The notes under the pieces were generated by a model that was not told where the DNA came from, did no database searches, and worked only from the letters and a program-made list of their open reading frames with translations. From the NCBI GenBank assembly GCA_965644315.1, contig CBFFRQ010000018.1, positions 310,001-374,000 on the forward strand: DNA of 64,000 bases, in the 5' to 3' direction. This DNA is from Caecitellus pseudoparvulus. Lineage: Eukaryota > Protista > Bigyra: Bicosoecida. Both the position numbers and the translations under genes were made by a program. Shown one piece after another: positions 40,057 to 42,601 of the stretch (its first letter is position 1; every line of letters starts with the position of its first letter).

Positions 40057-41809
40057 ATGGAAGCAACAACGAAGGGCCACCAGGGCAAGGAACTGCCCAC
40101 CTTGCAGAGTCAAATGTTCAAGTACTTTGGCGGCTTTGTGACAGCGGCAGTCGTGCTGATTTTCGCTGTGTGCGTTGCAGGCCGCGCTTGCGCGTCGCAT
40201 GGCTCTCTGCTGCACTGCACTTCGTGAGACTCTCAGGTTGGCGGGTGGCATCGCCCTGACGGGGGACAGGACCAGCACCATCTCCCGGGAGGGCCTGGAC
40301 AAGCAAATCAACACGCACCTGCGCACATCTGCGAGGGAGCTGTCTGCCCGTGTTGGCCTGGAGTTAGGCGCCGTGGAGAACAGCGTCGTGAGGTACACAG
40401 CCAGCATTCACTCGCAGGCCACAGAGTCAGACTTTCCCTGGGAGGTGCCAGAGGAGGACTACACGTTTGATGAAATCCCGCCACAGTTCGTGGGCCCTGT
40501 TGCCCGTGTGAACAACGCCCAGCGCTCTCTGCGTTTCAGCTCATACTACACAGCGCCGAACGTGGCGCGGACGGCTGCCGTCAACTCCAGCATCTCCACG
40601 TCCCTGTCCATGCAGTACTTGTACCGCGAGCTGTGGGATGCCCACCCCTCTGTTGTCGCGATGTACACCGGGTACGAAACGGGGTCCATGCGCCTGTACC
40701 CGGGGCAGGACCCTGCAGAGGTGTTGACAGACTACGACCCCCGCTTGCGTGGGTGGTACCGCAGTGCCATGCGCACAGAGAGCTCTGTCATCCAGACGTC
40801 GCCTTACATTGACGCGTTTGGACTGGGGTGGCTCGTCACTCTGGCCCAGCCGGTCCTGAGCCCCTCCTCCGTCTCAGCCACAGCAGTCGGCGTGGCGGGA
40901 GTTGACGTCACCATCCGCACCCTGCAGCGGTCCATCCTCTCAGTGGGCTTCTTTTCAGAGCAGTCCTCTGCGAGCATGATCCAATTTGATGGGCGCGTCG
41001 TGGCTGATCCGTTCTGGGACGCCGACGCCGACGCCGTGCGCGCGTACGCTGCAGCCGACAACGCGCAGACCGTCCAGGATGAGCTGGACATCCTGGACTC
41101 CTTCGTGGCGCCCAATTTCTTCGACGTGCACCCTGGCGTCTCCCGCGCGCTGTGGGAGAGCATCCGGGACCCACAGGGTGGCATCAAGACGCTGCAGTAC
41201 AGCCGAGACGGGGAGGTGTACATCCTGGCCCGCTCCTTTGTGCCAGTGCACCCGCTGGATGACGCCACCCTGACCCCCGCCGAGGCCAGTGCTGCAGCGG
41301 CCACGTTCCAGCCTCAGTACGTCATCACCGTGGAGGCCAAGCGAGCGGATGTGCACGCGACGCTGGACGATATGGCGGAGCGCATCTCCAGTGGGACTGG
41401 CACCCTCATCGGCATCGCAGCAGGAGTCTGCTTCGCCACGCTGGCGATCGTGCTGGGTGTGCTGTACTGGACATCGCGGTCTGTGACGTCCCCCCTGAAG
41501 GGCATGATGGAGGTAGCACGGGCCATCACATCCTCCGCTGAGATCGGCGTCGCGTCGGGAGACATTCAGGAGCGCACCGCCAACATCAAGGAGACAGATG
41601 ATGAAATCGGCGCCTTTGCAGGGCATTTCAAGCGCATGGTGGTGGGGCTGGACAACAAAGAAGTCACGCGCACGAGGGCAGCGGAAGCCGTCCCCAACAA
41701 GCTCTTCCGCACACTGGCTCCGTGTGAAGTTGGTGTGCAGGCGCCCCCCCGCGCCGAGCGCTTGCCGTGGGAAGACGGCTTCCGGGCCCTTGGCATCCCT
41801 ACTGAGTAA
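40057..41809 (+). CDS. TM-dCache-TM-HAMP sensor protein without an output domain
   Basis: Exon 1 (MEATTKG..FKYFGGFVTAAVVLIFAV) joins LAGGIAL through intron 40170-40236 to complete TM1. Cache motif MYTGYETGSMRLYPG..YDPRLRGWY..PYID..GVAGVD, TM2 LIGIAAGVCFATLAIVLGVLYW, HAMP-like VTSPLKGMMEVARAIT..DEIGAFAGHFKRMV. Confidence 0.85.
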
Positions 41810-41820
41810 TTGCTGCCGTA

Positions 41821-42601
41821 CTATCGTGCATTTCCCACCTGGTCCAACACCGCAGCGACCACTGTGGCGGCTTTGGCGTCAAAGCCACCCTCGGCAGGGT
41901 TCTCAGCTTTGCAGTGCACGGGGTGGGAGCCCCACGCGTCCAGCACGGCCTTGTCCAATGCACGCGCTTGTTCCGCAGTCTCTGTGCGAGCGGTGTTCGT
42001 CGAAAGGGTGTAGAACTCCTCTGCTCCGTCAGCAGCGGTGACCATGTGCACCACTCCATCGTATCGGGCCAGCACTCCCTTGCCAGTCAAGCCTTCCCGC
42101 TCCAGGAGCGCGCTCCACAAGTCCGCTGGAAGGTAGGCCGAAATGTCCAGCAGCGCTCTATCATGGATGATGACGCTGGGTGCACCAGTGCTCCTGGCAA
42201 TCTGTGCGGGGGGGAGAGCGCCAGGCAAGATGTGGCAGAGATGCACGACGCAATTTCCGCACGCCACCACGCCAACACACCTGTGCGAAAGAGTCCTCGG
42301 CGGCCAGCTGCATCCGAACGAGAGCAGACTCAAATTGCATGAGTCTCTCTCCAGCATCTGGTCCAGGGTACTTTGCTCCGCCGGACTGCAGAATGGTGGG
42401 GATCTCCGGCACAAGGTACACCTGCGGGCGCACGCCTGGTGTGTGCGCAAGCACTTCGGGCAGACCTCGCGAGCGTCGCCATACCTCCCATCCTTTGGAG
42501 CGCAGGGCCTTGTCCAGCACTGGAAGGACGCTTGTCTTGCCAGAGCACGGCCCTCCAGTGATCACAATGCGCCGAACTGGGGCAGCCGCTGCACTTGCCA
42601 T
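41821..42601 (-). CDS. NadR/TTD14-type P-loop NTPase (AAA_28-like)
   Basis: RIVITGGPCSGKTS, VPEIPTIL, HDRALLDISAY, RYDGVVHMVTAADGAE.FY..NTARTE. Two inferred introns. No C-terminal CYTH domain is visible. Confidence 0.88.

Follow-up and report, generated by a model that had tools for sequence, protein, structure and literature searches.

In prokaryotes, Cache domains are the most common type of extracellular sensor. The eukaryotic ones described to date, to our knowledge, are limited to the VWA-interrupted type of alpha2delta and CACHD1, whose part in signalling is unclear. All eukaryotic dCache_1 proteins were said to have a VWA domain inserted in one dCache domain, and no dCache_1AA proteins were found in fungi (PMC8915833). 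A precedent for a sensor lacking an output domain is the bacterial Cache_heme-HAMP (CHH) receptor, the HAMP dimer of which is bound by a kinase from the same operon via its helical repeat modules (bioRxiv 10.64898/2026.05.25.727664). We analysed a window of 64,000 nucleotides (nt) from the marine bicosoecid Caecitellus pseudoparvulus (assembly GCA_965644315.1, contig CBFFRQ010000018.1, positions 310,001 to 374,000 of the forward strand), in which a gene at 40057-41809(+) encodes a Cache receptor of another kind. The gene is expressed and spliced, and its product is a two-pass plasma-membrane receptor made of a first transmembrane helix (TM1), an extracellular dCache_1 sensor, a second transmembrane helix (TM2), a HAMP domain and a short tail, without an output domain. 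From its place in the trees it appears to be the eukaryotic version of the short member of a receptor pair found in Asgard archaea. We lean towards the view that the protein is an amino-acid-sensing co-receptor that would signal in trans via long receptors carrying TPR repeats and a VWA domain. What the present analysis adds is the short family, together with its position in the tree and its association in operons with the long one.

Gene Structure and Expression

The spliced gene encodes a protein of 561 amino acids (aa) starting with the ATG at 40057, the coordinates and the frame being read from the sequence. The features, in window positions, are the following.

40057..40169, + strand: exon 1, with the start codon, a cytosolic N-terminus of 23 residues and TM1 up to its 15th residue
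40126..40261, + strand: TM1, residues 24-46, a hydrophobic stretch in the spliced translation with the intron inside
40170..40236, + strand: intron, 67 nt, GT..AG, phase 2
40237..41809, + strand: exon 2, with the end of TM1, ectodomain, TM2, HAMP, tail and stop
40262..41404, + strand: extracellular dCache_1, residues 47-427, with a long N-terminal helix, a membrane-distal and a membrane-proximal module
40733..40906, + strand: amino-acid motif Y204, R209, W211, Y212, Y228, D261 (full-length numbering), from the HMMER alignment to PctA
41405..41467, + strand: TM2, residues 428-448, from hydropathy
41468..41686, + strand: HAMP, residues 449-521, with helix 1 from a conserved Pro, a long connector and helix 2 from DDEIG
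41687..41806, + strand: cytosolic tail, 40 residues, with N-K-L and L-P-W-x-[DE]-x-F-x-x-L-G motifs and no domain
41807-41809, + strand: stop codon TAA, end of the exon 2 open frame

Domain scans, database searches and folding used the exon-2 piece 40238-41806(+). Exon 1 (38 codons) was assessed by direct reading and by alignment to orthologue contigs, and the joined translation of the two exons was used for the orthologue alignment, the trees and the table of single nucleotide polymorphisms (SNPs).

Exon 1, whose ATG is the first after an in-frame stop, had been missed by the open reading frame (ORF) track. A preliminary description of the window had nevertheless proposed this exon and the intron at 40170-40236, and both the RNA junctions and the orthologues bear them out. 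The junction 40169->40237 was present in two metatranscriptome contigs independent of each other, X3 from RNA-Seq and X15 from oligo-dT, which start within exon 1 and then splice out of it. A split codon (GT before the intron, G after it) puts both exons in one frame. The intron was retained in X17, a 5983-nt DNA contig from a related strain. A 536-aa version of the protein with its start inside the intron (P0001) is ruled out, as this stretch is spliced out in the RNA contigs. L005 and L006, two metagenomic orthologues with 57% and 53% identity to the window protein over exon 2, share its first exon (LPTLQAQMFKYFGSFVVAAV..) and carry an intron at the identical codon position, and the exon 1 peptide LPTLQ(S/A)QMFKYFG(G/S)FV..AAV..IF.V is kept in both. 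At L005:2238-2292 and at the matching L006 site, a second short intron follows ...DKQTDT; the window gene is devoid of it, and this appears to be an intron gain or loss between related species.

The window protein and its two orthologues align from start to stop, with ends differing by one residue at most. A convergent minus-strand ORF (window 41821-42450) ends 12 nt past the stop of the Cache gene, a distance that leaves the two genes with either overlapping or very short 3' untranslated regions. At the corresponding place on the matching contig L004, the called gene showed a weak AAA_28 match. The RNA contigs stop short of the 3' end, the position of which at 41807-41809 is supported by the conservation among orthologues and by the lack of room downstream. 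Splicing on to a downstream output exon, such as the kinase or cyclase exon that the preliminary description had considered, is rejected in view of the stop shared among orthologues, the convergent ORF and the AAA_28-type gene of L004.

Comparison with the related strain X17 over the 1683 nt of coding sequence revealed 20 SNPs, 14 synonymous and 6 non-synonymous, and three more were found in the 67-nt intron. This pattern was taken instead of the ratio of non-synonymous to synonymous substitution rates (dN/dS) among orthologues, which was uninformative as dS was saturated. A tblastn search of the neighbouring genes against the orthologue contigs returned no matches, had no positive control and supports no claim about synteny.

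Organization of the Protein

TM1 (FGGFVTAAVVLIFAV/LAGGIALT) is contributed mostly by exon 1, and an N-terminal transmembrane helix was also seen in the aligned Asgard and eukaryote-type relatives. In the AlphaFold2 (AF2) model, one unbroken helix runs from the membrane-proximal module through TM2 into helix 1 of the HAMP domain. The HAMP sequence begins helix 1 with SPLKG... and helix 2 with DDEIGAF. It scored 23.0 bits in the protein scan against a Pfam cut-off of 25 (PF00672), and in a six-frame scan of the genome 24.4 bits, or 25.6 bits with neighbouring matches in frame, where it was flagged as over the cut-off. The HAMP assignment held under structural examination: the model displays a helix-connector-helix directly after TM2, and the signature Pro and Glu are kept in nearly all family members.

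The tail of the window protein holds N-K-L-F and L-P-W-E-D-G-F-R-A-L-G. Both tail motifs are kept in the three orthologous proteins, with P-N-R-W...K-P-W..L-G in P0004. A short helix was predicted by AF2 at residues 549-555 (511-517 of the exon-2 piece), inside a 10-residue block with a mean predicted local distance difference test (pLDDT) of 80; the remaining tail is disordered in the model.

No VWA, MCP-signal, kinase or cyclase domain was detected in the window protein by Pfam and NCBIfam. MCPsignal (PF00015) had no match in either collection, just 40 residues being present past HAMP, and VWA_N had no Pfam match, the dCache being continuous in the AF2 model. The motif CXXCH is absent and the ectodomain is without any cysteine, the sole cysteines being C436 in TM2 and C534 in the tail. 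The earlier proposals of a TM1-extracellular Cache-TM2-HAMP topology followed by a short tail, and of the absence of VWA and output domains, are thus consistent with the translation, the AF2 model, the domain scans and the stop shared by the orthologues.

A protein without an output domain could also be a non-signalling one: it might serve as a ligand-binding decoy or as a dominant-negative regulator of long receptors, or be a truncated paralogue in decay. A truncation ending with HAMP could poison dimers of full-length paralogues. Against this explanation, the full length including the HAMP signature and the tail is kept in three species, the family is kept from Asgard archaea to eukaryotes, the gene is transcribed and spliced, and synonymous changes outnumber non-synonymous ones in the comparison with strain X17. 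A dominant-negative role would moreover still amount to pairing with long receptors. We consider a non-signalling protein very improbable.

The Sensor Domain and Its Amino-Acid Motif

The Pfam matches of the window protein came in the expected order, dCache_1, MCP-like_PDC_1 and HAMP. The dCache_1 match (PF02743) covered 40643-41053 with 27.1 bits (E 3.8e-6, cut-off 45) and the MCP-like_PDC_1 match reached 26.1 bits (cut-off 27). The AF2 model of the exon-2 piece, computed from an alignment of 90 sequences, had a mean pLDDT of 89.2 and a predicted template modelling score (pTM) of 0.75. It consisted of a long N-terminal helix and two alpha/beta modules, with an ectodomain pLDDT mostly above 90. 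The best Foldseek matches were full-length models of Bacillus chemoreceptors (McpB/YvaQ) and the ligand-binding domains of PctA, CtaA, Mlp24, Mlp37 and Tlp3. The TM-scores, normalised to the target, were 0.79 for PctA (5t7m), 0.80 for CtaA (6py3) and 0.77 for Mlp24 (6ioq), with E values of about 1e-11; CACHD1 and alpha2delta ranked after the bacterial chemoreceptors. A phmmer search of the Protein Data Bank sequences retrieved CtaA (1.8e-9), PctA (6.5e-9) and CACHD1 (7.9e-9). The profile scan and the folding suggested by the preliminary description therefore gave the expected domains, if below threshold, and a dCache fold.

The motif YDPRLRGWY-x15-Y-x32-D lies exactly at 40733-40906. In PctA, the AA_motif corresponds to Y121, R126, W128, Y129, Y144 and D173 (Gumerov et al. 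2022, PMC8915833). The HMMER alignment placed YDPRLRGWY, SPYIDA and GVAGVD of the window protein opposite YDPRSRPWY, EPYVDA and GVVGGD of PctA (5ltx). The six window residues fall on the PctA motif residues, with a loop spacing differing by +1 and +4, and the motif noticed earlier is thus complete. Both orthologues, and 40/46 eukaryote-type relatives, carry the identical residue at each of the six positions. By its fold and motif the sensor would belong to the dCache_1AA class, and the motif points to an amino acid as the class of ligand. A role in the chemosensing of prey or nutrients is speculation.

The Short dCache-HAMP Family

An exhaustive HMMER search retrieved 1223 relatives at E <= 0.001. 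The best 150 of these were mostly 450-600 residues long, with two transmembrane helices and the same layout as the window protein, and about 50 of them were tailed members of the eukaryote type; the family is a widespread one. Among 90 relatives of similar length, 82 had a dCache_1 match at E <= 0.001 and just four carried a known output domain. The named members were the stramenopile Cafeteria roenbergensis (P0012), the chytrid Cladochytrium tenue (P0083, KAJ1559861.1) and the giant virus Yasminevirus sp. GU-2018 (P0039, VBB17673.1). The nearest ESM Atlas cluster to the window protein was wholly eukaryotic. A word-index protein search with the exon-2 piece returned the two orthologues besides the protein itself and nothing else, and the same search with the 90-sequence profile added nothing new of use. 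Scanning the genome collection with a generic HAMP peptide pattern gave mostly bacterial kinases and chemoreceptors with 22-28% identity, in addition to one truncated Heimdallarchaeota match; these served as the source of the outgroup and as the entry to the Asgard genomes.

Members of the short family were defined as matching its profile over the full length and ending no more than about 100 residues past HAMP. The Asgard short proteins outside the profile set scored 346-478 bits over the full length of the short-family profile. The window protein scored 460 bits over positions 9-467, a partly circular value as it is among the 20 sequences used to build the profile. Two trees were computed, one with 114 rows (LG+G4) and one with 52 rows (LG+C20 with posterior mean site frequencies, PMSF), by quick searches with Shimodaira-Hasegawa-like approximate likelihood ratio test (SH-aLRT) support only. 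Most eukaryote-type rows were metagenomic proteins, classed by clade membership and tail features and not by taxonomy, and the bacterial sampling was small. In both trees the bacterial kinases and chemoreceptors were placed on the outgroup side, outside a clade of Asgard and eukaryote proteins (support 96-99), in which long and short proteins split into two groups. The long one (support 88-98) contained the Asgard long proteins and two long genes of C. pseudoparvulus. Inside the short one (support 99 in both trees), a eukaryote-type clade (support 96-99) that joins the window protein and its orthologues with Cafeteria, the chytrid and Yasminevirus was nested among the Asgard short proteins. 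The short and long proteins thus appear to be old paralogues, both represented in eukaryotes.

Because of this nested position, the window gene does not appear to be a recent bacterial acquisition. The preliminary description had presented it as a domesticated bacterial chemoreceptor, a framing at variance with both trees. In the corresponding explanation, a bacterial chemoreceptor or kinase sensor would have been transferred recently, gained an intron, lost its output and adopted an unrelated partner. The closest solved structures are indeed bacterial chemoreceptor domains, as are the closest solved sequences, CACHD1 apart. A bacterial origin has been proposed for the Cache superfamily (PMC8915833), and the ESM Atlas look-alikes include bacterial clusters of short Cache-HAMP proteins. 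The bacterial matches to the short-family profile, however, reached only 60-130 bits and were partial, from the distal module onward. The window gene has a host-like composition (GC 0.61-0.66) and its intron position is common to diverged species. A recent transfer is slightly more improbable still, in our opinion, than a non-signalling protein. With so limited a bacterial sampling, the Asgard-plus-eukaryote family as a whole may ultimately have come from bacteria.

Long Paralogues and Asgard Gene Order

The genome of C. pseudoparvulus contains exactly two long dCache-HAMP-TPR-VWA genes, which are convergent on contig C64.

G000:C64:303147-306221, + strand: long gene 1, dCache-HAMP-TPR-VWA
G000:C64:307784-311143, - strand: long gene 2, dCache-HAMP-TPR-VWA

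The short gene is present once, on contig C18, and holds the only HAMP match of the genome detectable with Pfam. The HAMP-like regions of the C64 long proteins were visible only with the family profile. A word-index search with the TPR-VWA part of a C64 long protein returned four proteins.

The gene order in Asgard genomes links the two families. The short genes P0017 and P0008 lie on prokaryote-like contigs (L013/L014 and those carrying P0008), 10-13 nt downstream of a dCache-HAMP-TPR-VWA gene of 895-899 aa, and the same long-then-short order was found in a Candidatus Heimdallarchaeota metagenome-assembled genome. A search with P0017 of 400 genomes of the Heimdallarchaeota phylum gave matches in 120, usually one short and one long frame. 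Among the 40 long-type matches listed, 31 had the short gene directly downstream on the same contig and strand by our count; one pair was 185 kb apart, and for the others the partner was on another contig or not listed. Among the 24 Asgard loci read (L099-L127), the short gene was preceded by the end of a long gene everywhere except at L099, where the upstream ORF is without the long-gene ending. In the Asgard archaea, the long sister receptor is thus probably the signalling partner of the short sensor, and this gene order suggests that the window protein pairs with long receptors in the same way. The physical pairing may have survived in the protist despite the two types of genes being unlinked. 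The preliminary description had left the partner open; its view that signalling must occur in trans stands, and the long dCache-HAMP-TPR-VWA paralogues, arranged in operons in Asgard genomes and present in two copies here, provide a concrete candidate.

A third gene on the same strand follows the short gene in most Asgard loci (L101-L103, L108, L110-L113, L116, L117, L119-L121, L123-L127; for example L103:2969-4372(+)). It encodes a pyridoxal phosphate (PLP)-dependent ornithine/arginine decarboxylase (Orn_Arg_deC_N, 3.4e-30). Some Asgard short proteins, those of 544-664 aa at L107, L118, L122 and L104, showed a C-terminal extension opening with a zinc-ribbon-like CPxC...CxxCG, so that not every member of the short family is output-less.

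A Proposed Model of Signalling in Trans

HAMP is a dimeric relay without activity of its own, so that a protein ending shortly after it would act through something else. The absence of any output domain past HAMP is in agreement with the earlier suggestion of signalling in trans. In the model that we propose, an amino acid would occupy the pocket of the membrane-distal module, and the resulting conformational change would travel along TM2 into HAMP. The HAMP domain, unable to act alone, would work through the long paralogue. This could take place in a parallel short/long heterodimer formed along TM1, the N-terminal helix, TM2 and HAMP, or by contact of the helical TPR region of the partner with a HAMP dimer of the short protein. 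In the second case, the TPR region could play on the short HAMP the role that the kinase modules play in the CHH receptors. The TPR-VWA scaffold of the partner would be the actual output.

The interface of an Asgard pair, residues 1-480 of the long protein with the short protein, was modelled and passed with an interface score (ipSAE) of 0.73, the best of three controls giving 0.00. This mark was reached by 58/80 solved complexes and 2/110 mismatched pairs. The runs shared at least 85% of the contacts, and the pLDDT of the partner was at least 79. The modelled interface is a parallel dimer via TM1, the N-terminal helix, TM2 and HAMP, in which HAMP residues of both chains touch. The prediction shows that a heterodimer is plausible.

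Several observations weigh against this model. The interface was computed for the Asgard pair and not for the protist proteins, and it cannot separate a heterodimer from homodimers, which a prediction for paralogous dCache receptors would be expected to give as well. In the protist, the short and long genes lie unlinked on contigs C18 and C64. The protist long proteins are very diverged, with a stem branch of 2.1-2.4 changes per column (Cafeteria is also long-branched), and the C64 long protein reaches just 80 bits against the short-family profile. The carboxylate-binding Arg is lost in most Asgard short proteins of the phylum search, where it is replaced by E, D or Q, so the ligand of these proteins would differ from the one predicted for the window protein. 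Together with the decarboxylase neighbour, this replacement suggests an amine (agmatine or putrescine, for example) as the ligand of the archaeal pair, in place of an amino acid. Every Pfam score of the protein scan lies under its curated cut-off; the sub-threshold dCache_1 score reflects divergence and not a different fold, and the doubt about the fold is removed because the AF2 model and Foldseek support a dCache. Finally, the eukaryote-type tails with conserved motifs of their own suggest an output that would need no long partner.

This last point leads to another explanation, in which the protein is a self-sufficient homodimer and the ligand-driven movement of HAMP exposes or hides motifs of its own tail, recruiting adaptors or the endocytic and ubiquitin machinery. 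PPxY and P(T/S)AP are established binding motifs for Nedd4 WW domains and for the endosomal sorting complex ESCRT-I, respectively. An enrichment of NPxY-like, PPxY and P[ST]AP motifs was seen in the tails of the approximately 50 eukaryote-type relatives (for example P0047, P0050, P0033, P0099 and P0013). The median number of residues after HAMP was 55 in the eukaryote type compared to 0 in Asgard. N-x-x-[FYW], PPxY and P[ST]AP were found in 30/50, 15/50 and 13/50 eukaryote-type tails, compared to 7/44, 0/44 and 0/44 Asgard and tail-less members and to 2/50, 2/50 and 0/50 length-matched control windows of the ectodomain. The tail motifs of the window protein are kept in three species, and the block with its tail helix has the mean pLDDT of 80 given above. 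These data suggest that the tail motifs may recruit adaptors, Nedd4-type ligases or ESCRT-I, and a link of the tail to Nedd4 and ESCRT sorting is possible. The window protein itself, however, is without PPxY and P[ST]AP, the aromatic residue of its N-K-L-F is lost in the orthologues, where N-K-L is kept, and matches to short motifs are weak evidence. A homodimer would also leave the two long paralogues of the genome unexplained. We regard this explanation as unlikely, though worthy of attention. It is compatible with the co-receptor model and does not exclude it: a tail-borne output may replace the long partner or add to it.

Implications

C. pseudoparvulus has a eukaryotic receptor in which the prokaryotic wiring from input to relay (dCache, transmembrane helix, HAMP) is intact and the ligand motif can be read. 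This makes it a tractable system for understanding how HAMP signals without an attached enzyme, and the Asgard operon provides a specific, testable partner. It is conceivable, though on balance we doubt it, that eukaryotes inherited a two-protein Asgard amino-acid receptor, composed of a short co-receptor and a long scaffold, which still work together in protists, chytrids and some giant viruses. This hypothesis implies a so far undescribed ligand-gated signalling system of archaeal descent older than LECA, the last common ancestor of eukaryotes, and would overturn the published generalisation on VWA in eukaryotic dCache_1 proteins. If the pair is of Asgard descent, a ligand-sensing membrane receptor is added to the signalling equipment that preceded LECA.

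Comparison with Known Systems

The window protein is not a chemoreceptor, nor an alpha2delta/CACHD1-type protein, nor a CHH receptor, and it resembles each of them in part. It is similar in fold to the bacterial dCache_1AA chemoreceptors PctA, CtaA, Mlp24 and Tlp3 (target TM-score 0.77-0.80), and has the same Y-x4-R-x-W-Y...Y...D in the membrane-distal module and the same TM1-dCache-TM2-HAMP order. It differs from them by the lack of a methyl-accepting signalling domain, ending 40 residues past HAMP. Its gene is eukaryotic and contains an intron, and in the trees the protein groups with Asgard and eukaryotic proteins and not with the bacterial ones.

With alpha2delta and CACHD1 it has in common a dCache_1 with the amino-acid motif (E 7.9e-9 for CACHD1). 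Unlike them, it is without VWA and VWA_N, its dCache is uninterrupted, and it is a two-pass protein with a HAMP domain. The short dCache-HAMP family thus contradicts, as an exception, the statement that all eukaryotic dCache_1 proteins have a VWA domain (PMC8915833). The chytrid member, the motif residues of which were not checked one by one, may likewise contradict the absence of dCache_1AA proteins from fungi. An alpha2delta/CACHD1-like gene is also present in C. pseudoparvulus, at G000:C79 around 152125-155994 (L007:6125-9994, minus strand). It carries VWA_N, VWA and two Cache regions, and encodes 1290 aa from the first ATG in a 1557-aa open frame.

The CHH receptors of proteobacteria signal in trans via an operon-encoded partner that binds HAMP with helical modules, to which the proposed pairing can be likened (bioRxiv 10.64898/2026.05.25.727664). 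The window protein differs by its double Cache with an amino-acid motif, and by the absence of CXXCH and of any cysteine in the ectodomain. The partner of the CHH receptors is a Ser/Thr kinase, whereas the candidate partner here is a paralogous TPR-VWA receptor, in an Asgard and eukaryote lineage.

In the dCache-HAMP-TPR-VWA long receptors, the sensor-transmembrane-HAMP module is homologous and aligns over the full short-family profile, and they form the sister clade to the short family, with which they share an operon in Asgard. They run on into TPR repeats and a VWA domain, whereas the short protein ends after HAMP.

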